From Orbicella franksi (lineage: Eukaryota): a stretch of DNA of 64,000 nucleotides. The stretch covers positions 27,404,001 through 27,468,000 of the forward strand of contig OZ116699.1 of NCBI GenBank assembly GCA_964199315.1, written 5' to 3'. The notes beneath the pieces are model-generated. The model did no database searches. It was given only the letters and a program-made list of their open reading frames with translations, and was not told the origin of the DNA. This document shows positions 2,455-64,000 of this stretch, one piece after another. A program made the translations under genes and the position numbers. Numbering within the stretch: position 1 is the stretch's first letter; each line of letters starts with the position of its first letter.

Positions 2455-3424
2455 AGGGACTTTAAGATTCAGGACGCGACGGCTTTTAGAACGCGGTGAC
2501 CGATCAAAGACTGGAACTAGAACGCCGTTGTTAGCAAAGGAAAAATAACATTAAGTTCTGCCACGCGATGCGCACAACGCCATCGCTGCGGTATTACAAG
2601 AAAAAAAAATTGTAAAACCCAAAAATAAGGGCGATTTTCCGGGTGGAAAAGGAGGATTTTTCTTAACTTGAAGACCCTCTGACTTGAAATGTTTGTGTAC
2701 TCTAAGTGGTCACAAACTTTCATTTATTTGGATTTATCAACGCTTATTATTCTTTGCTCGATGTTTGATGTTTTCTCGCTTTTATTACTTTCCCTCGTGC
2801 AACTTTTCTTTGGTGTGTAAGCTCTCAACACAGGGTAAGTCTGGTCGCTTGTCCTGAAACATAACCGACAAAAATACAGTATCACAGGTTTGCGGCGCCT
2901 TTGCGAGACAAGTGAGCTTCGGCGAAACATCGACAGGTGTTTTTTATCGGCTAATACACGGGTCAAATTTCGGTAACGATGTGTGTAAAAGACAACGAAA
3001 CTGATCGCAACCAGTTGCATTCAGAATTATGAGATTTCATACATGTTATAAGCGATAAACTTTAATACTTGATATCGACGGTTGGGTCGACGATGCCATA
3101 TTTTTGATGCTTTAGACATCTATAAACAATGTCGGAAAAAAAATCAGAATCTTGAAATTTTGCAATCTAAATCAGCCACAAACTACCTACTTGATTGGAA
3201 GATATAAATCTTAAATGTTAAGGAGAATATAACAAGATTTTCTTTGACACAAGAATGATTAATTCTCCCGTTTTGTACACAACGCCAACATTCAAAAACT
3301 CACGTTCTCGACGCGACGTGACTCCAGTGGGACGACGGCTTAGGCATGCGCAGTGTGCATCTTGCTTGAAAATTTACTTCCGGCGGCATCATAGAGCCGT
3401 CGCGTCCTAAATGTTAAAGTCCCT
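2455..3424. mobile_element. Non-autonomous DNA transposon with ~30-bp TIRs
   Basis: Left end agggactttaagattcaggacgcgacggct; right end reverse-complements to agggactttaacatttaggacgcgacggct. No clear TSD. Confidence 0.7.
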
Positions 3425-51042: not shown

Positions 51043-53744
51043 TCACAGCTTCAACCGCTGGTGGAAGGTTCGACGTAGAGAACTTTTGATGGCCTGGAGA
51101 CCTTTTTCACCTTGGTTGTCTTTTTCTTGCCCACTGGTTTTTGGTTCTTTCGAGAGGTGTTGGGAGCTACTGTCTGATGCAGGGGCCTGGTGCGGACGTT
51201 GGGTGGTGGAGAGCTGAAAGCTACAGATCAACAAAGAAGAGACATGAGTTCATGTATTGATACAAAACGATGTACTCTTTTGTTGGAGTGACCTTTACAA
51301 CTTATATCCCTCTCTATAATTGACCGAACGAAACAACAAATAAAGAACACAAACAATGCCCCTAAGCATAAGAACAAAAAAAGAGTGCCGTTTAACAAGA
51401 ACGAAAGAAAATAGAAGTTGTAGAGCAGTGGAGATCAATTGACACATTCGGTTGACCTGTTTACATCCTTGATGCCGCCCAATTCAGATCACGTGATGAT
51501 TCATTTTAGCGGTTACAATTGTTCTGTTTGCACATAGGACCATGCAACTGAATCAGTTGCGCGTGGCAAATTGCACAATTTCAGCCTCACAAACGAATCA
51601 TCACAAGGTCTGAATAAAATAGCAGCAAGGATGTAAATTAAACTCGTTAGCCGAATCCGTCTGTTACATTTGTTTTTCCCACAGCATTATCATAACAAAA
51701 TGTAAGCAGTGACGGTGACAGAGTTAAAAAAACCTCATTACTTCTTTTTTGAGGATAACATCTCGATTTTAATAACAGTGTCTTTAAGCCACAGGATCTA
51801 GACTACTTCTAAGACGCTCCTGTTTCCGCTACAGGAAATGAAAAGGACATTTATGAAAAAAAAAAAGCCACAGCCAAGCTATTTGTATTTATAGCAAACC
51901 GATTCAGTATCAACTAAAGCACTTCATGGATAGAAAAAAAAAGTAATAAAAATAAAGCGTTCCTATGTAAACAGTAGATGCAATATTAGCTGACAGTAAC
52001 ATTGATAAAAAATGGCCGAGAAGATGCGTAACGACAAGCTAGCTGGAAATCTTCTTCACTCCCAAGGGTTGCTATAATTCCTTATTAAAATGTCAGCCTG
52101 GCCTTCCTGTTTGAACGAAAATGGTTGAAATTTAAAAAAAGAAAAATATGCGCTGACATGAAATGTCATATTATTCTGCAAATATAGAAAAGAAATGTTT
52201 TCAAATTTCCGATCGTGTTTATTTTATAGAGAATCGACAACAAAAGAAAGTAAATAAACTTTGTATACATGGAGATATGTATGATATATTTTTTATCAGT
52301 AAAGCGAAGACTTAAAATACTGTAAAACAATACAAGGCACTTGCTTTCCCGTAATGATTACTGGGTTGATGAAAAAGTGATTACTCTTAAAACGTTGAGC
52401 GTATCGAACTATTCTTTGACAACACAAAAGAACAACATTAGTCAAACTGGGAGGCATATTATGTTCTTCAATGTACCCCTTTACGCGGTGAGCTTTTCCT
52501 ATTTGCAAGGCAATTTCAGGAAAAAAAAGTACAGCATTGCCCGAAATTTACTCTCATATTTACACATATTGGTTATATTGTAAAGCAAACAACAAAAGCC
52601 AACCGTGAAAAGGAAAGAGCTATTAGAGTATTCATATTCAAGCCAAGAAAGTTTAACCATTGGAAAAAATACCACCTCCAGTGTCTCAAAGTAGGCTTTC
52701 ACGTCTAATGAATGCACTTTCATAATTGAAGGTCGCTTGTTACCTTCCCGCTCTGTGACTTTGTAGTAGTATTAATGAAAGTATGCATGAGACGTGATAC
52801 GTGTTAATTTAGCTGTTGCTTTAAAGAAAAGAAGATTGCAACATGTGAATTAATCCGATATTACGCCTTTACCAAGTTTCAATTATTTCAATGAATTATG
52901 CAAAATAAGGTCAGAGTACACAATTCCCAGGCTCTTATTGATTTTTAGGCTTTTTACTACATCATAAGTCGTTGGTATTTACTAAAAAGCACTATTGGGT
53001 TTACCATGTGTACCGCATTCGAAATGTTGATTTTTTTTCCCATAACATTAAAGCAGTATCGATCGTAAGTTGTCATAATGGCCTACTGGAGGATTCCAAA
53101 AAGCTTTATGCATGATTACGTCAGACATCATAATTCACCCGCAAGCCTCGCTTGCGAGAAATTTTCTCAAGCCTCTTCAAGCTGGTTTTTTTGTGTGTGT
53201 GTGGATATTCTTTTCATCTTTGCTGCTTTGGAAATTTGTCCATGATAAAATTTACAATTTGCATTTTTAAAGGGAGGATCGGTGGTGAAATTTGCTTGTC
53301 TAGTGTCACCACGCTAAAGGGCTATTGCTTCGAGAAAATTCGTGTCTAGTAACTTTGGATACTTAGAGGCTGTTAAATGTGTGAACAAAACCTTTTTACA
53401 GATAAAGAAAAGATTAGTTGTACTCTGGGTCTAGAAGGAAGTGAATACTGCTGAGGTGGAGGGTAAGGAGGATTACAGGAAATCGTCACAATTGCTGGTT
53501 TTCAGTGTCACGCAATTCAAAATAGATCAAAATAAAAATAAAAACCGGTCAATAGATAAAGTCCAGAATCTAGGAAATGAAAGAAGGTAAATGTCCAAAG
53601 ACTCTCGCCAAAATTCTAGTCACAGCAATTTTTCTTGTGCGAGATATGCGGAGAATTTTTTTACCCAAATTTATAGAGATTTGTATGGAGAAGCCATGCT
53701 GGTGCCCATCCGTATGGGCACCAACATGGCGGCCGGAAACTGAC

Positions 53745-53790
<46 letters not shown>

Positions 53791-56700
53791 CTCGAGGAAC
53801 TCTAAAACATTAAAATAATACTTTTTCTAAGACATCAACTGTTCAGATAACCAAGTTCCCCGAAATAAGTCACTTTTTTAACCATCATGACATCTCTCTA
53901 GGCCGTCATGTAAATACCGCGTCAAGCAAAAGCTTAGAAATTTAAGCGTAGTGTATCACAAAACCAAGAACCCATTCGGAGCGAAAATTTGTATGAATAT
54001 TAGTTTTCAGCTGCTCTCATACATCATTTAAGTAAAATCTCAGGAAGATCAATAGTTTTGTACTTCGAATTTTAGTGACGTCATGTGAAAACCAGCTATA
54101 GCCTTCCACGTGGAGCCAGAAATCACTTTGCGCAAAAGAGAAGTCGGTTGAAAAACGTTTTGCATCATATTTAACGTGATTTTAAAACTAATCACGAAAT
54201 TAAACAACAGTTTAACTCACCTGCAACAGGGAGATCATCTTTGTATTCGAAATGAACTGCCCTACTCCAGGATGGGGAACGTGGCTGCTGCGTACATCGT
54301 GATGGTGACCGCAAGCTTTTATCCCTGGGTGAAGATGGAGCACCAGCAGCATTTCGTTTAAGCGCTAAATCTTCTATAAATTTCTAAAAGAAATGAGAAA
54401 GCATGACATTTTGGGTACTTTCTATGATAAAAGCTAGATGTGTGGAGGGTTTTTAAACCTTTTTTCTGGTGGCAGTTTTGAAAGAAGCTCGATTGTCAGT
54501 AGATCCCCTCCCTCCCCCTGAAAATTACTTGGTTTGCTCCACAGCTCTTTTGTGCTTATTTCCTCTCGTACTGAACAGTGATGGAGATAAACGTCTTTTG
54601 CATCTTATGGTAGCAGGGGTGCATGCTTAACGAAGTTTACTTTCATAAATTTTACTGACCTGTGGGGGTCCTTGGGGGGTTATCTTCCGTCTTGGGACTG
54701 CCCCTTTGGACGACGGAGCAGTCTTCTTTTGTTTCGCGATTGGAGGAAGAGTTCTTGGGGTGGAATTGGCTTTTATACCAGGCCAACTTGACTTTCGCGT
54801 TTCTTTCTTAATCTCGGGTTTAAGTGCTGTTACGTTCTCAGGGTTTCTCATTTTGTTACTGGCTACTATCGAGGCAGCTGCCATTTTTGCTTCGGCCACT
54901 GTGTGTACGGTATTCGCGATGGCCTGACCTTGTTGTTCCCCTTGTTTACTGTCGTTCTTTTCTTGGTTATTGTTGTTCGTAGCTTTATTTTTGCCTTTTC
55001 CTTTCTTTTTGTCTTTGTCCTGAATTAAAAAGAGAAATGCCTCATCAGAAAAAAGTATTTGCATATACATGCACATTTACCACACAAAGGTGTACTTCTG
55101 CGGGTTATGCTGTTAGAACATGGGGGAGTTGTTGAATACTGGCCGATATTCAGTCTTGAGTTGTTTGTCGGGTTTTTTTTTTTTTTTTTTCACTTTTCCT
55201 TCTTTATTTTTTGTTTCTTTTTCTCCATTTAGTAGTTAGAAGGTAATATTAATAGCATTCTATTGATTTTATATGTAATAAATGTCAAGTATAAGTAAAA
55301 TGAATATTGTAAGCTACGGTATTGTGAATAGTATCAGTAGTGTAAACTACGATAGTATTTTGAGTGGCGGTAATAGTAGTGTAAGTAACGGTTGTATTGT
55401 AAGTAACGTCAGCAACGGTGTAAGTGATATTAGTATTGTATACGTAAGTAAGGTAAGTGCTGTAGGTAATATTATTGTAAGAAGTGTTAGTAGCGTAAGT
55501 AATTTTAGTATTGTATGTAATTAATTTATGATTAAAAAAAAAAGTTAGAAGGTAATAAAAAATAAATAAGAATTAGCTCAAATTTTAAAGCACGAGTCCA
55601 TGGCAGACAGGTCATGTTGGGAGGTGATATTGGAGCTCAAGTTGAACCCGGTTATGTTTCTGAACATGGACTGTACAACAAGTGCGATTGTCTTTTCGAA
55701 AAACAATCTCGATATTAGAGGCAAATGGAACGAAAGTAGATTCATTCAGTTGTTTGAATTGACATGGAGATGAAAGTTTTAACAATCCCGTTCTTTTATT
55801 AATAAACGTTTTGTGTTATAAAAGATCGTGTGATTCATGGCTTTTGCATTAAATTTTAACCTCAGAATACGGTATTGCATGAAAAAAATGATACTTAAAT
55901 AAGAATTGTGTACCTTGTGAAACACTGACACTACACTGAATGGTAATGTGTAGAAAAAATATCAAACAAACAAAAAATTACCCCCCAATAGTTACCCTAT
56001 TCAGTCTATCGTTAAAGAACCGAAATATCTCAAAATCATTATAACAAGTAGTAAAATCTTTGTAGTTCAGCTAAAGACCAGATTGCTTCAGGTTAAACCT
56101 GTTAACTTTCTTGACGTTTAGCAGTTTTAATTGGCGTGATTTATTTTAGAGAAAATCATCACTTGCTGATGTGAAAGATAAATACTACCTAATGGTATTT
56201 TGGTATGAATAGACTGTCAGCTACATTTTCTAATGTACCTCTTCTTCTTCGATTTCAATGGCTTCATGTTCGTCAAAGGGTGTCACCAGAGTGCTTTTCC
56301 ATTCCCAAGCGGCAAGAATTAGTTTACGCACTTCAGGGTTCAAGACAACATAAAACAAGAAGAATCCAAAACCCTGTCGACATAGCAAATGCAATTAAGT
56401 GTTTGTCCAAAAGCGCGGCAAAGACTTCGTCTTAACCTGTTTTTACCATTTGTCCATCCAATTAATTACATGATTTTATTTCATGCACTGTAAATCAGTG
56501 TTTGCGTATAAATAATCACTGGACACCCCGCAGAAACAAACAAAGAACTTTACTATGTTCTCGTGTGTGCCTTACTAAGTTTAGTTCAGTACTAAACGTC
56601 TGCGCGGTTAGATTTCACTAGCTCATGAACATAACCAACATACGTAGACGCACTAAGTTGCTGTTAAATGTAAGTAGCCCCTCTTTGTTTTTTTTGAGAT

Positions 56701-58560
56701 TTTCCTAGCAAAATCAAAGGAGGCCAACAATCCACATCTTTCTGAGTCATCGTATTTTGCTTATGCTTATTCCTATATGCTAGTGAAAACCAGGCTTACG
56801 ACGGTCTACGCACCTAAAGTGCCTAAAAAAATACAGTGAAAGTAGAATCATCACCTGCAACGCGTTAAATATGGAGAAAAAGGTATGGTAGATATCACGA
56901 TCGATGTTCAAGGAAAGTGATCCCAGAAGCCAGGTTAGAATGACACTGATTGTTATGCAAACCACTGTTTGTAAACCGGACCTATTGAGAGAGTTATTTC
57001 GTTTCAACAATTAGTACAAACCAGGAGGAAAGTAGTAGCTGATTCAGAATTGACTGTAGTATCAGTGATATAAGCAGCGAAATGCTTTAGTTTTGAGGCG
57101 AATGAACGACCTATTCGAATTTATTGTTGTTTGGACGAAGAAAGACGGTATCCTAAGAAAACTACAACGTTCTATTGGAACCAACCAGCGAATTATTTTG
57201 TATTCGGGAAAAAAAGGGTCCGTCTTTGATTGATCTGGTCGAAGTTCATTCATGTAAATTTAAAACACATTAATATAACTAACTGATGCCTTACTTGATG
57301 ACACTTTTCTTGGTTTCATTTTCTTCAATGTCGCTGGACTTACGGTAAGTAATCAAAGCTTTCGCCAACAAAACAATGAGTATTAATTGTACCTGAAAAC
57401 AGAAGAAGCAATATGCTCATGATTTTGGATATTTATTATCCATCAGAGTTAGGTGATAAGGAGACAGCCCTTGGCTCATTTCAGGCTCTCTGAGACATGA
57501 GTGTAGGCAGGCCTGAAGATGTGCACTCCGAGACCTGAGTGAAGGCAGTTTTCCACATCGGTCCCCGAAAAGAAAATCATGCATGAAAAATAGCCATACC
57601 TCGAGAATTTGATGTTTCATTACCACCAGGACGCAGTCGCGTCCCGGGTTGTAATGAGGATTGGATGGTCAGAGAGGCTGGTAGAAGAATCGCAGAAAGA
57701 TCTCTTGAGATGCATAGCGATAGGTAATCTACTCACCATCCCTAACGTAATTATGGGTGTTGCCACTGACCAGCTCAACGCGTCAGAGAAGGAGATCCAG
57801 CAGCTGAAACAAAGGAAAACAAACACATAATTGATGTATTTGTTTAAATGTATCAAAAAGCCATCAACACAACAAAAACAACAATAAATAGAGCAGAAGA
57901 GTCTCCTTGAAAACGAGTTGTATGTCCGAAGAGTGATAATAGTAGTGAGCTGTATTTTAATGAGGAAGATATTTGAACAGTGAAGTGATGAAGTAAACGA
58001 AAAATCATAATCACTAAAAAAAGAAAAATGCAACATTTTGTTTCAAGAAACTCTATCAATTCATCCTTTTGGCCCTCTGCCAGTGTCGGTCCTGTCAGCT
58101 GTGTCTATGTGTCTATGTGTCTGTCTGTCTGTTTCTTTACATTTCAATGAATATAGTATCGCAATATGTTAATATAAACAGGGATTAACTCACTGTGGAT
58201 GTTTATCGTACATCTCGTACTTAGAGGCAAGGACACATACAACAACAAGCGGTAAACCTGAACCAAAACCGCAGCAAAACATTAGTGCATTTTAAATCAC
58301 ATATTGCAATGCAATGTATATTTCACTGCTCAACTACCAACGTCGTATTGTAAAAGACTGTCCATGATAACTTTCCTTACCCCAAGCGCCTGCGTAATAG
58401 AGTTTTGTTTTCAGTTTCTGCTGCTCCTCGCTTTCACGCTTCCTGGTGAAGGAGAAGAGGTAAAGGGCCTGGACTATAAGCCAACAGAGAGTTACAAGAG
58501 ACAAATAGTTCATGGTAATGGCCACAACAGCACAAGCAATCTGAAAAGAAATAAAACATC

Positions 58561-58592
<32 letters not shown>

Positions 58593-61500
58593 CATTTGAA
58601 TGGTTTAACTTATCAACAGTTATTTACAAAATATGTAAATGCAAAAATAATCATTAACGATCATTAGCACACCCTTTCACAGTCATGTGACAAAGTGAGT
58701 AATAGAAACTCACTTTACGTGTACGTGTCACTACAGAGCTAAAATCAGGCGATCTCTCATAGTGATCTTACTTTCTAAAACACTACAACTCGATCGTTTT
58801 TTAAACACTTCATTAGGAGATTTAAAGCTATGCAACTAACAATTATTTAATCAGTGTATCATTTTGCAAGAATTGATAAAAATATCACCAAGATTATTTT
58901 GGTTTCAGTTGCACTATATAACCTGTTTTGAAGGCGTATGTCATCCATTTGGTGCTCATTACGTCAAATATCGTAAAGGTATTCGATGTATTAAACCTAC
59001 TGTGTCATCTCTAGCGTCAGCTCCGGCCAGGAATAAAAGCTGAGATAGTAATACGCAAATCGCTTGACTCATTTGCATATCTCGTTCAAAACGGCTGTCC
59101 CTGCATAGAGAAACGATTACAATATGTTACAACGAATGCTTGTTTTAGACGTTTAACGTGACATTCTGTCAGTCAATGGCTACATTTTGCACTTTGATTT
59201 GCGCTTACTCGACACACTCAGCGAGTCAGTGCTATACGGGCATTTTATAGCTCGACGAGCTGCCCTACACGGTCGTTCTCATATCTTTCTCATCCCGTGG
59301 ATTACCGGAAGGAAAATGTTTTACAACAAGGTAACCCTTCATGAAAGTTTCCCCGGGCCTTCTATCTCAGGGGTCTAGTGCCCGGCAATGTGCGTATTGT
59401 TAGTTAAACCTAGCGGGGATCTTCGAAAAAGTGCAGCAGGGCTTTTTAAATCTCCTGCCTAAATAGCGGAATTAACTCAGGAATGAACTGTCATTGCTGA
59501 ATATTACTGTGTGCATTGCCCCTTACATCTCTATCAAAACTCTGTTGAAACTGACAACCTGTAAGAAACGGTTACTGACCAATCCCCAATGATGACCACT
59601 TCATAAAAGTGTTCCTCGATCACATTCGATTCGATGCGAATTACAAAAATTGGTGTCCATATACTATGGATACTATTACTATTACCAAAAGTGTTAAAAA
59701 CTATGTTCTATCTCGGCAATATCAAACTTAAGTTTCCACAATTCTTCCAGCCCTTTCCTTTAGTAATCCGTCCTTCTACTCCCATGGTTTTTTATGTTCA
59801 CTCAAACGAGATGGAGACTAACTCGATAATCTCGCGGTTCTATTAGCCTCCATGCACAAACTATGTATCATTGTCACCTTTAATTGTTATATATGTATCT
59901 TTTTTTCTTTTTTATGCTAATATTGTAATTTCAAAATGTAAGTGCAAAATAAAGTGAAGTTGAAGTTGAAGTTGAAGTTGAAGTATGGAACACAATGCCT
60001 TCATCCTTATTACATAACAAGGTGTTACGACAGCAATAGTGCGCGAGGAAACGGTTTAGAAAAACATAGATAACAGCTTTTTTCAGTCTAATAAATTTCT
60101 TTTGAGTTTCTCACAATTGAACACAGTTAGCAAACATAGGAAGTACTTATAATAATTTACCTTATTTCTTGCGGATTTTTATCACTTTCCCCCTTTGCCT
60201 TGTTGACTGAATTTCCTCCGTGCTCACTTTCCAGGATAAAGTATGTGAAACAAGGACACATCGCTGCCATTACCTTACGCTTTGTGACTTTCCTTTTCAT
60301 GCGGACTAGAAAACTAACTTTTTCAGTCTTCTCGACGTTATCACTCACTTCACGAGTTTCGGTTTTTTCAATGCCATTTCCTTCTGATTCTTCTTCAGCC
60401 TTTGAAGCCTTCTTAACTATGTTGTTAGATGAAGAGGGCTGCCATTGAAAGCAACAGATTGTCACTTTTTCTGGTTCCCGATGAGAAAAAGAACTGTTTG
60501 AATCTTGCGTTGTGTTCCCGTCATTTTGTTTCACGTTTTCACCTGTGGCTGCTTTGAGATCATTGCTCAAAAAATGGTTTTGGTCTTTGTAAGAATTTAG
60601 TGTTACAGCATCCTTTCTCTTTGGTTTAGTTTTTTGAAATACGTTTTCAGTGTCTCCAAGTCCTGTTAACAGCTTATCATAGTTTCGTTTCATTGTTTCG
60701 GCGCCAATCCTTCTGACCCTATCTTCGCCAATTGGAACCTTTTCTTTTTGAACTCCTTTTGATGTAACAACAGCTACCGATACACTTGTACTCGTAACCT
60801 GACGTTTGAAGCGAGCTCCCTCGACAAGAGAATCAGTCCCTCCAGAAACCGTTGTTTCTGTTGCCAGTGTTTTTTCTATAATTGTGTCTTCTCTCTGTAA
60901 ATCATAAATCATCGAAGTCACCAGACTACCGTGACGCGAGAGTTTCCTTTGTCGACCTTCACTGGAACATGGGGAATTTCCTCGTGAGAATTCTTCTCCG
61001 TGCGTCGCGCGGCCGTTTCCTTTCTCTATATCATTTCCTTTTCGACATTTCTTCATTCCTGTCATAACATCAGTCTTCTCTTCGGTAACATGAACTGAAC
61101 GCGTTTTTTCTTTCTTCAGATCACCGCTCTCTAGTAAAAGGGTGAGACTGGAGCGATTCTGACTGCTCTGTTTTTCATCATCGTCTCCTTCAAAAGCCTC
61201 GTTAACTACAGAGTTATTGTTCTTTTCTTTGCCTTTCCCTTTTTTCTTCTTAATCTTCGTGGAGCCTTTGAGTTGAAATTCGTTTGCGCATCTGCATTAA
61301 AAAGATGGATTGATCAATGACATTATACTGTCTACACTTACCGCCAACATTTACTCCACGCGCAACTATGATTCAAAATGAAAACTGTACTGTTGATTTA
61401 GGATCAGAATTAAACTCTGGATTACTATTCTGGAAAACTGTAGATACTTGACCATTGTTAACTCATCGGGGTAGCTATCAATTTCTAAATAAAGATAGAC

Positions 61501-63722
61501 AGAAAACTAGTACGTAGATCGTCTTGTTCAAGAGATAATTTGACTGGAATTACGGAAAAAGTAAACAGACATTTTGTTTGTACTAGCTCACAATGAAAGT
61601 TGTTGAAAAACTTTAAAAACTGACTTTGAGTATTTTATGATATCGTTAGATACTTGAATAAATAAAGAAAAAATTGGCAAAGTCGAGATTTTAGATTTGG
61701 AACTCCATACTTACGATAGCGTAACAGCAGCTGCTACGGCTGCTGTGGTTCCGACGGTCGCGACTGCTACTCCGACGAACACTTTCTTAGGAATCGGAAA
61801 GGTGGTGTCATTACTCTCTGAGACTCCATCCGTGTTGTTCTTACTCTGATCAATAGAAAATAGAAGCAATCTATTAAATGATGTATTTAACATGCGCCAA
61901 TCACTCAATCATTTTATTGCATGTCGAACAAAGCAGGTTGCTGGCGAAAGAAATAATCATTACTGAGTTTTCGGTATAGACATGCGAGGAATTGAGAATG
62001 CCAAAGAATTGTAGAGACTGAAGTAAGCTGCAGGTGTTGTCTGCTTTATAAGATCTTTCCGCAAGAAGCAATTCTGGGTGTTGGTAAGATGAAAAAAGAA
62101 GGAATTCACAAATGATATGTGAAATGGAAAGCAACCTACCGTTATTCTGATGAGGTCCTTGAACAGTGTCAAACTGAACGTATTTGTCTCATTAACTCCC
62201 TCGACTGAGACATAAAACCATCTGCTAGAGCAAGCTTTCACGTAAATGATCAATCCTTCTGCAGCGAATTCCTCGTCAGATACAAAGCGGGGCTCGGTGC
62301 TGCCTCCCTTGGAAGTAGCATTACAAAATGTACTGTTTTGAAGGTCATCCAGTTGCCAAAGGGGATCGCTATCAGCAAGCTTAATATCTCCATGGAACTC
62401 ACAGGATCCAAGGTTGACGTGATAATTTCGGGGATTCCTGATGCTTGTAGAAACTGAGATACCAGCACTTCCATGGGATGTTTGCAGGAATACGGTCTTT
62501 ATCCCCGTCTTGTTCAACAAGTCGTATTTATAATATTTTACAGAATTTTGTACCACACTGGACACTACCTCTTCTTCTTCCTCGAGCAGAGCAGGTTCTA
62601 AGAAACAATGCGTAAGGAAAAATAGTGTAGTAATTAATTGTAAAAGAAGAAATGACTGCGTTTTTAGAAATGACTTTAAGCAATGTGTGTTTACTCACGA
62701 GGGAAAATGATGTCATCTGCCGATTGAGCAAATGTATGGCGATATGCCACGTGGACGTATGTTGTACTTGACCGGTTTAGTCATGCATGGGAACCCAAAA
62801 ATTTGGAAATTTTTCGGTTTAAACTTAGAAATTGCTTACAATTGTGGAAATGCGTTTTTGCCACTGGAAAGCAGAGCTGATTCTTGATTCCTTCAGTATC
62901 GTCGAACAGCAATTGATCGGCAAACCGAGATTGTTGCTTACGGATTAGGCTGGAATTTGATATGGGGCTTGCTTTTTGACATCACTGACCTACTATCCCA
63001 CTTTAAAATGTAGGGAAATAGTTTTTCCTGAAACTGAAATTCAAAAGATGACAAAACTTACACCTTTGAGTTGAAGCTAGAGATGAAAGGACAGAAGAGA
63101 AAGCCGGATCACAGCGAAAATAGCACGGCAAAGCACTCACCATAACACGAGCTTTCTTGAATGTTTCCTACCAGGGAATTTACGCCTGCAAAGGTTTTGG
63201 AAGAAACTACATGATGATCATCAGGATCACTGGCAATGATATTCAACTCATTCTTGTTTAGTCTCTGACCAATCCCTATAACAAAAATGTTTACCCCGTC
63301 TCCACGGAGCAACTCGGATGGTGTGATTACCGAGCCCGTCCCCAAGCTAGCTCTTCCGTCAGTAAGAAGAACAAGCACTCTCGGAATACCCAATTCTTTA
63401 GCTCTGACTCCGTGATCTGGGTTTCCAAACAGGCTTGCATGGGCTTCTAAGAGAGCTAAGTCGGTGCGGGTCAAACCAGGTTCGTAAGGTACCGATCCAG
63501 TTGCACTAAGGACGTCTTGCTTGTTGGCGTAGGTGTTAAAACGAAACATTGTCGTCGGAACGTCGCTGTATCTGATGAGAGCCACTCGAGTGCCATCAGG
63601 ATATGAAATGTTGAAATATTTGCAAACCTTTATGATGAACTGGAGTCCAAGTTGAAAGTTGGATGGATTGACGCTGGTAGAGGAATCCAATACGAAGGCT
63701 AAATCGATCGGATTTTGACAAT
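51043..63722 (-). CDS. VWA-domain adhesion/secretin-family-like 7TM receptor with very large ICL1 insert; 5' exon(s) outside the window
   Basis: Phase-consistent exons: 63722-63141 (VWA; DSSTS..T..LTDG MIDAS), 62597-62140, 61845-61715 (TM1), 61291-60161 (377 codons, low complexity), 59100-59001 (TM2 SQAICVLLSQLLFLAG), 58540-58381 (TM3 IACAVVAITMNYLSLVTLCWLIVQALYL), 58257-58194 (TM4 WGLPLVVV), 57803-57737 (ECL2 CWIS, TM5), 57392-57295, 56981-56855 (TM6 LTWLLG; TM7 FFSIFNALQ), 56373-56239 (GFGFFLFYVVLNPEVR), 55019-54660, probably 54383-54221, last exon 51213-51043. The junction between 54221 and 51213 is unresolved (needs a phase 1-to-0 exon). Confidence 0.83.
53491..54100. mobile_element. Non-autonomous TIR element in an intron of the 7TM gene
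   Basis: Left attgctggttttcagtgtcac; right end reverse-complements to tatagctggttttcacatgacgtcac. Internal hairpin atgctggtgcccatccgtatgggcaccaacat. Confidence 0.6.
55234..55557 (+). mobile_element. TSD-flanked, A-tailed insertion (retroposition signature) made of degenerate GTAAGT-like repeats
   Basis: AGTTAGAAGGTAATA at 55234-55248 and 55543-55557; A-run at 55534-55543 immediately before the second copy. Confidence 0.7.
58561..58590. repeat. (AAT)n microsatellite
   Basis: Directly visible; adjacent to the TM3 exon acceptor. Confidence 0.95.
59956..59984. repeat. (GAAGTT)n hexamer repeat
   Basis: About five tandem copies. Confidence 0.9.
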
Positions 63723-64000
63723 CTAAGGAAGATAATTGAGATAAATTAACTATTACCCTATTCATACATATTTTTGCGTGTGTTTTACGCGAATGGACAA
63801 AAATTGTTAAGGCGCGCACAAAATTAATGTTGTGGCTGACTTATTCCACTATTAATGAAACAACTTTTCGTCTAAGAATCAATCAATGAGAAATCTAGAG
63901 GAAGACAGAGCTACGATATCTTCGAAAAGGACATTAATATGACCTTATAATTAATATCTCGAGCGCGGTCTCTGCCAATGCTTTTTTTTAATAGGATGTC

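Follow-up and report, generated by a model that had tools for sequence, protein, structure and literature searches.

A 1131-nucleotide exon that probably gives a stony-coral adhesion-like receptor a giant, disordered first intracellular loop

Introduction

Does a coral receptor gene carry an extra exon, several hundred codons long, in the loop that joins its first two membrane helices? The question is raised by a 64,000-nucleotide (nt) stretch of the Orbicella franksi genome (GenBank assembly GCA_964199315.1, contig OZ116699.1, positions 27,404,001 to 27,468,000 of the forward strand), hereafter the window. Coordinates below are window positions; the receptor gene lies on the minus strand, and its codons are read along that strand. 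In a G protein-coupled receptor (GPCR), the first intracellular loop (ICL1), which connects transmembrane helices 1 and 2 (TM1 and TM2), is the shortest and most length-constrained loop, and in class B receptors it adjoins the G-protein and helix-8 interface. A preliminary description of the window placed a 377-codon exon in the ICL1 of an adhesion-type seven-transmembrane (7TM) receptor and proposed that its inclusion or skipping acts as a splice switch. The analysis reported here shows that this insert is a genuine, internal coding exon of a single-copy coral receptor gene, and makes it probable that it is included always or nearly always and produces a giant, disordered ICL1.

Results

The insert exon and its splice frame

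The features around the insert are as follows.

61715..61845, minus strand: TM1 exon (..FPIPKKVFVGVAVATVGTTAAVAAAVTL-S), with donor TC/gtaagt and phase 2 at its end
61292..61714, minus strand: intron 1, 423 nt, with GT..AG borders
60161..61291, minus strand: insert exon, 1131 nt, symmetric (phase 2-2), 377 residues; open frame, conservation, and inclusion in cDNA and RefSeq models
59101..60160, minus strand: intron 2, 1060 nt, with GT..AG borders
59001..59100, minus strand: TM2 exon (DSRFERDMQMSQAICVLLSQLLFLAGADARDDT), with a phase 2 start; acceptor ctctatgcag/, then G GAC AGC CGT...

The TM1 exon ends with ...GCT GTT ACG CTA TC/gtaagt at 61715. The insert exon starts at 61291 (A TGC GCA...) after the acceptor ttaatgcag/ and ends at 60161 with ...GAA ATA AG/gtaaat. 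If left unspliced, this donor translates as AGG TAA, with the stop codon at 60159-60157. The coordinates, phases, and exon boundaries given in the preliminary description were all correct on the minus strand. With 379 codons, the insert frame is the longest open frame in the window; given that stops make up 0.067 of codons, chance alone would produce about 5e-7 frames of this length over all six frames of 64 kb, and the probability for any one frame start is about 4e-12. The insert is indeed rich in K/E/S/T, as had been noticed (K 12.5%, E 9.8%, S 9.8%, T 8.2%), and has a net charge of +12. The computed skip of the exon gives ..AVTLS-DSRFERDMQMSQAIC.., a product that would show a normal-looking ICL1 (..TLSDSRFERDMQ..). 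Inclusion adds 377 residues and, with the insert joined to both TM1 and TM2, yields the ICL1 of about 390 residues that had been predicted.

Inclusion in mature mRNA

Is the exon present in mature transcripts? It was found that a Logan contig of Pocillopora cDNA (ERR9592219_47841, L016, 5588 nt) has a single open reading frame (ORF) of 1538 residues with both a VWA and a 7tm_2 domain. Aligned with the genomic Pocillopora locus (L011), it falls into 19 blocks with the introns removed, and the TM1-insert and insert-TM2 joins lie exactly at the predicted sites. All four RefSeq isoforms of Pocillopora verrucosa (XP_066015404/05/07/08) include the insert (..VVTLS-CAKEFE...QVMR-DSRFERDMQ..) and differ from one another at the N-terminus and in TM7 only. 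The 1449-residue model ACROYT_G007000 of Oculina patagonica (P0054) includes the insert as well. In Orbicella, the O. faveolata protein XP_020624295.1 reads ..AAAVTLS-CANEFQ...NPQEIR-DSRFERDMQMSQAICV.., which corresponds exactly to the junctions 61715>61291 and 60161>59100. Intron 1 is spliced out in this protein, and the equivalent intron is spliced out in the Pocillopora cDNA contig. XP_020624295.1 belongs to a 100%-identical ORF cluster, and over 13.5 kb the window shares 99.3% identity with the GenBank scaffold MZGG01001852.1. Thus, the splicing of the orthologues and the RefSeq models uphold the earlier view of a genuine internal coding exon in the ICL1 of an adhesion-like class-B 7TM receptor.

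Two side observations concern these models. In isoform X2 of P. verrucosa (XP_066015405.1, P0035), 26 residues (GVAFFLFYVLLNEKVRQLILSVWEWK) are absent relative to P0034 (alignment columns 1129-1154); this predicted variant is without most of TM7, which would break the seventh helix. On the same Oculina contig as ACROYT_G007000, a second model that is 84% identical to it (ACROYT_G007002, P0055; 820 residues) runs from the signal peptide to TM1 plus about 120 insert residues. This model may represent a truncated duplicate or a haplotig, or else a genuine paralogue with a single membrane pass.

Conservation of the insert exon

Is the insert found in other corals? The preliminary description had suggested a search for orthologues with the same insert, and at least 33 clusters were obtained at 90% clustering, all in corals, from 100% down to about 33% identity. 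At 50% clustering, 14 relatives were found among 1.8 billion representatives, all of them exon-sized ORFs on coral genomic contigs. The genus names given to the relatives are Orbicella, Pocillopora, and Oculina. Across corals the insert frame stays open and its motifs are conserved, even at insert identities of 25-35%. The ratio of nonsynonymous to synonymous substitution rates (dN/dS) of the insert is 0.50 and 0.35 in comparisons with the two closest relatives, and even relatives with saturated synonymous sites have the frame open.

Eight coral loci have the TM1, insert, and TM2 exons in this order, wherever the contig extends far enough. In these eight loci the TM1 exon ends in TC/gtaagt (gtgagt in L006), and the TM2 exon is 62-91% identical in the six loci, other than that of the window, where it was found. 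Across the loci the insert acceptor consists of a pyrimidine tract, (Y)nAG, then A or G, then TG[CT], while the donor is AG/GTAA. The exon measures 1131, 1119, 1119, 1119, 1116, and 744 nt in the six loci where its length was taken, and every length is divisible by three. The 'CR' ahead of the exon is the translated acceptor (TGCAG/A), and the invariant final 'R-stop' is the translated donor (AG/GTAA). Since the residues beside these sites vary while the sites themselves are kept, the pattern points to splice-site constraint and not to a protein terminus. Between two Pocillopora lineages, a segment of 131 codons inside the exon is present or absent in frame, giving ORF forms of 394 and 263 residues. 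The difference is genomic and not due to splicing (2707-3100 of the cDNA contig L016 versus 10526-10528 of L011). The insert is tolerant of large in-frame length changes.

A homologue search with the full-length Pocillopora protein returned Oculina proteins only, with no orthologue outside the stony corals and no relative lacking the insert. Nothing pointed to where the insert came from: it matched no Pfam family, the ESM Atlas gave no look-alike, and the genome showed no paralogue of it. An origin from the K/N-rich C-tail exon of the same gene was also considered and rejected, as the two have no significant similarity despite a similar KKKGKGK..NNN start.

Disorder, conserved islands, and topology of the insert

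AlphaFold prediction of the insert with a 28-sequence alignment gave a mean predicted local distance difference test score (pLDDT) of 40.8, with 316 of the 376 residues below 50. Helices were predicted at residues 123-135, 190-208, and 327-354 only. Two segments stand out by conservation.

60911..60928 (approximate), minus strand: most conserved island, around SLVTSMIYDLQREDT, insert residues about 122-136; predicted helix 123-135, conservation 0.81-0.83
60230..60312 (approximate), minus strand: basic-then-hydrophobic helix FLVRMKRKVTKRKVMAAMCPCFTYFILE, insert residues about 327-354; invariant residues and a predicted helix

In the 28 insert sequences, S122, M127, I128, L131, and R133 are invariant in the first segment, and T336, P346, C347, F348, I352, and L353 in the second, where PCF lies just before TM2. 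The helix at 327-354 has the highest pLDDT of the insert (about 70), and its sequence makes FLVRMKRKVTKRKVMAAMCPCFTYFILE a candidate membrane-associated or palmitoylated segment. The conserved residues cluster in islands. Right after TM1 there is a polybasic juxtamembrane island (CAxEF..KGSxKIKKKK). The helical island SLVSSMIxDLQREDT is preceded by RKxSRxxS. There are also a Ser/Thr-cluster island (FKRQxTSTSVSV), a di-cysteine island (CCFQWQP), and an island ahead of TM2 (SFLxRxKxKxTxRKVxAVxCPCFTYxILE).

No 19-residue hydropathy window above 1.0 exists inside the insert. A hidden transmembrane segment was considered and rejected, the sole hydrophobic run being about 13-14 residues long and lying ahead of TM2. 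Since the insert has no segment of transmembrane length, the whole of it must be cytoplasmic for TM2-TM7 to keep their orientation. The topology and disorder predictions proposed in the preliminary description therefore agree with its expectation of a largely disordered cytoplasmic segment.

Architecture of the receptor gene

The encoded protein consists of a signal peptide, a GH19-like region, a VWA domain, a family-specific module, TM1, the insert, TM2-TM7, and a long tail. By homology, the gene spans from a signal-peptide exon about 4.6 kb past the upper end of the window down to about 51129. The remaining exons within the window are as follows.

63142..63726, minus strand: VWA-domain exon (extracellular), inside the open frame 63840-63112; Pfam VWA E=6.9e-39 and tblastn against the Pocillopora and Oculina orthologues
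62140..62607 (approximate bounds), minus strand: family-specific ectodomain exon between VWA and TM1; tblastn, 53-64% identity to orthologues P0034/P0054
58381..58540, minus strand: TM3 exon; Pfam 7tm_2 E=1.6e-6, 28 bits (cut-off 20.6 bits), profile positions 75-118
56239..58257, minus strand: TM4-TM7 exons (58257-58194, 57803-57737, 57392-57295, 56981-56855, 56373-56239); sequence and tblastn to the orthologues
51129..55004, minus strand: C-terminal tail exons (approximately 55004-54675, 54374-54222, 51221-51129); tblastn to residues 1215-1436 of the Oculina protein P0054

Two introns among TM4-TM7 were confirmed by RNA contig joints with CT..AC ends, 57390>57735 (X3) and 56372>56854 (X4). 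The exon at 62140..62607 is single copy in the genome, and no Pfam family matched it. In the 497-Mb genome the insert occurs once, and so does the gene as a whole. The 5' exons beyond the window (G000:C2:27468001-27478000, window-extended 64108-68594) encode the signal peptide (MAARAILFIALFLLQGK) and the GH19-like region. The similarity of this region upstream of VWA to class I chitinase / GH19 is weak (E about 1e-3 to 3e-5 in the orthologues). A GH19-like domain is an unusual companion of VWA on a 7TM receptor.

Is it an adhesion-type receptor? The exons of the window are 50-88% identical to the orthologues P0034, P0054, and P0089, in which 7tm_2 matches with E=2e-25 to 7e-26 across profile positions 45-248. 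The nearest solved structures to TM2-TM7 of the orthologues are ADGRD1 (6e-24), ADGRL3, and ADGRE1, with E ranging from 6e-24 to 1e-13; the glucagon receptor follows at 2e-11, placing the receptor closer to the adhesion than to the secretin type. The VWA domain gives it a large ectodomain with an adhesion-type domain. No GAIN/GPS family of Pfam was found in the full-length orthologues (E<=0.01 or 0.001) or in the pre-TM1 exon of the window. In the orthologues the 7tm_2 match begins at profile position 45, in the TM2 exon, 14 residues past the end of the insert. The TM1 exon by itself has no match to profile positions 1-44; it has the only hydrophobic segment of transmembrane length ahead of TM2 in the scanned TM1-insert-TM2 stretch, and it is taken as the first helix because the topology requires it.

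A neighbouring gene lies upstream on the minus strand, about 10-12.5 kb past the upper end of the window (G000:C2:27477852-27480473). It has the TM3 (..FAWMLVEGVHLY) and TM6-TM7 motifs of a canonical adhesion-type class-B receptor and is no close paralogue of the VWA receptor.

Annotation of the locus and a repeat in intron 2

It had been predicted that automated annotation would fragment the locus. This is the case in the older O. faveolata annotation (GCA_002042975.1), where the locus is split into three models of 384 (GH19/VWA), 655 (middle module-TM1-insert-TM2), and 210 residues (7tm_2). In that assembly, the block from TM2 to the tail (window 59966-54595) is repeated at 99% identity in MZGG01001852.1 (17834-24024) after a gap of 2157 N, while the chromosome-level genome has one copy. 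The duplicated block looks like an assembly artefact, and the fragmentation is due in part to the gap and this block. An extra 7tm_2 gene model of 438 residues is produced by the duplicated block. The newer Pocillopora and Oculina annotations have one full-length gene, and public databases already hold the protein as an 'uncharacterized protein'.

In intron 2, a repeat of about 290 bp lies at about 59685-59980, beside a (CAACTT)n microsatellite, with at least 45 genome copies at 87-94% identity. The depth of RNA contigs over it is 100-1500 times that of the flanks, because the repeat is multi-copy. An Rfam scan of intron 2 gave no match. The element is probably SINE-like (short interspersed nuclear element) or MITE-like (miniature inverted-repeat transposable element).

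RNA of Orbicella and of metagenomes

Orbicella RNA from four runs was aligned to the window, with a depth of 1-12. Introns, too, are covered by the contigs, and pre-mRNA or carried-over DNA is the suggested source. One X4 contig ends exactly at 61291, with 14 extra letters unlike the intron, and another ends exactly at 61715; I infer that these ends are branch points of the de Bruijn graph at exon edges. Run X23, a stranded poly(A) library, contributes 26 raw reads to 60800-61399, of which 21 show at least 99% identity; their first mates map to the plus strand, the orientation usual in most stranded libraries for minus-strand RNA. These runs show that the exon is transcribed. At position 61141, all reads and contigs of the four runs have A and not G; thus, the G of the window is probably a private allele. 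Among metagenome contigs, the exact Orbicella TM2-exon pattern had no match, and a degenerate pattern matched no cDNA but three genomic contigs that contain introns. In one contig (L017), no insert-like frame was found within 3.2 kb upstream of TM2, although the contig may end short of the insert.

Several points weigh against inclusion of the exon and its proposed role. Among the four Orbicella runs, at their depth of 1-12, no read or contig is listed across 61715>61291 or 60161>59100; for this reason, inclusion in Orbicella rests on the RefSeq gene model XP_020624295.1 and the orthologues. All 26 X23 reads fall within 600 nt of the insert exon and none on the other exons; one guess is that they were captured via an A-rich tract at about 61215-61255. 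AlphaFold prediction of TM1-insert-7TM with a 3-sequence alignment gave an unusable model (pLDDT 36.5), in which the packing of TM1 on the bundle is not visible. No homologue of known function was found for the insert in Pfam, among the 50%-cluster representatives, or in the ESM Atlas; the regulatory or scaffolding role suggested below is drawn from sequence motifs. A minor or tissue-specific skipped form is possible and would fit the present data.

Discussion

Constitutive exon or splice switch?

Could the exon be a regulated cassette, so that receptors with the insert and with a short ICL1 are made in different tissues or stages, altering G-protein coupling or trafficking in the way of the 16-residue ICL1 insert of the calcitonin receptor? 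The exon is symmetric, and all lengths measured are multiples of three. Skipping would therefore always keep the frame, and it would give a normal-looking loop. Class B receptors are also known to have ICL1 cassette exons (PMC13470297). However, constitutive inclusion needs a length divisible by three just as much. The skipped form is absent from the four P. verrucosa isoforms, which differ elsewhere, as well as from the Pocillopora cDNA contig, the Oculina model, and the O. faveolata model. The joint 61715>59100 is not listed in the four Orbicella RNA runs either, at a depth too low to count as absence or to count isoforms. No transcript, gene model, or contig with this skip was found, so the splice switch of the preliminary description did not gain support. 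A regulated cassette is thus unlikely, and the insert is most likely a constitutive exon.

The constitutive exon could also be read in a bolder way, which I regard as speculative and quite improbable: a tethered '1 + 6' receptor, in which the disordered linker of about 380 residues would allow TM1 and the VWA ectodomain anchored by it to come onto the TM2-TM7 core or move away from it. Acylated cysteines and basic patches would pin this linker to the membrane, and phosphorylation would tune it. Without a GAIN/tethered-agonist system, the ICL1 arm, and not ICL3 (the third intracellular loop) or the C-tail, would be the main platform of coupling and regulation. If this were true together with occasional exon skipping, one gene would alternate between a canonical 7TM receptor and a 'loosened' one.

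Does the locus instead hold two genes, or an alternative last exon? Readthrough at 60161 to the stop codon at 60159-60157 would then make a single-pass GH19-VWA-TM protein, and TM2-TM7 would be a separate unit without TM1. The unspliced frame does give Arg-stop directly after the exon, but any AG/GTAA donor in this phase produces it automatically, and all loci keep the donor while the residues ahead of it vary. There is RNA-contig cover of intron 2 immediately below the donor (X3, 60005-60150), but intronic cover is general in these libraries and not specific to intron 2. The old O. faveolata annotation has its separate 210-residue 7tm_2 model, but the split coincides with the 2157-N gap and the duplicated TM2-to-tail block. 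The 820-residue Oculina paralogue model, which ends within the insert, would also suit two genes. On the other hand, in the orthologous cDNA a single uninterrupted ORF extends through TM7, XP_020624295.1 splices 60161 to 59100, and a TM2-TM7 product by itself would be without TM1 of the fold. The continuous spliced ORF and the RefSeq junction contradict this scenario, which the preliminary description had named as the one that would overturn its reading, and I consider it very unlikely.

A chance frame, or functionless intronic or transposon sequence that became exonic recently, has practically no likelihood: the insert has no Pfam family, no homologue outside this gene, and a low-complexity composition, but chance is ruled out by the length of the frame (P about 4e-12 per frame start), the insert is single copy and not a repeat, and the frame stays open with conserved motifs down to 25-35% identity at dN/dS below 1.

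Comparison with known receptors

The preferred reading remains a constitutive exon within one receptor gene. Is there a precedent? In the calcitonin receptor CTb, a class B1 GPCR, an alternative exon adds 16-18 residues to ICL1 (PMC13470297). As in CTb, a discrete extra exon of a class-B 7TM receptor puts residues into ICL1 just before TM2. In both, the insertion site is fixed while the insert sequence evolves fast (for CTb, in mammals; PMC13470297). Unlike the CTb insert, the coral insert is 248-377 residues long (15-20 times longer) and has its own conserved motifs. Only mRNAs and models with the insert were found for the coral gene, and the coral receptor is adhesion-like and not a peptide-hormone receptor. 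It shares with the adhesion GPCRs (class B2; ADGRD1, ADGRL3, ADGRE5) the similarity in TM2-TM7, the 7tm_2 family, and a large ectodomain with the adhesive-type VWA. It differs from them in that no GAIN/GPS was detected beside TM1, in an ectodomain composed of GH19-like, VWA, and family-specific parts, and in an ICL1 of hundreds of residues instead of a few.

Long disordered cytoplasmic segments with Ser/Thr clusters are also found on the 7TM core of GPCRs with a long ICL3 or C-tail. ICL3 autoregulates the beta2-adrenergic receptor (PMC10033409), and long-ICL3 receptors recruit arrestin via phosphorylation of the loop (PMC13105114). These receptors offer a plausible model for how coupling may be regulated in the coral receptor. 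In contrast to them, the coral segment lies in ICL1, which has six residues in the beta2-adrenergic receptor (F61-T66). In the papers searched, neither this gene nor an ICL1 of comparable length is described, and ICL1 regulation on such a scale is likewise absent.

As judged from its motifs, the insert may be a cytoplasmic regulatory or scaffolding arm that makes ICL1 about 390 residues long. It would be held to the membrane by basic patches and by cysteine motifs that are probably S-acylated, and it would carry candidate basophilic-kinase and Ser/Thr-cluster sites. At ICL1, it may take the part that a long ICL3 or C-tail plays in other GPCRs, while TM1 would stay tethered to the TM2-7 bundle through a long flexible linker.

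Implications

For coral biology, the single-copy gene encodes what is probably a lineage-restricted receptor, whose ectodomain has VWA and lysozyme/chitinase-like parts; public databases present it in fragments (O. faveolata) or as an uncharacterized protein. The known ICL1 inserts of 16-18 residues already alter signalling. A conserved ICL1 of 250-390 residues would show that a very long linker can separate TM1 from the other six helices in the 7TM fold. The coral receptor may thus be a natural test case for the part of TM1 in assembly and coupling, and ICL1 would join the list of disordered regulatory regions of GPCRs.

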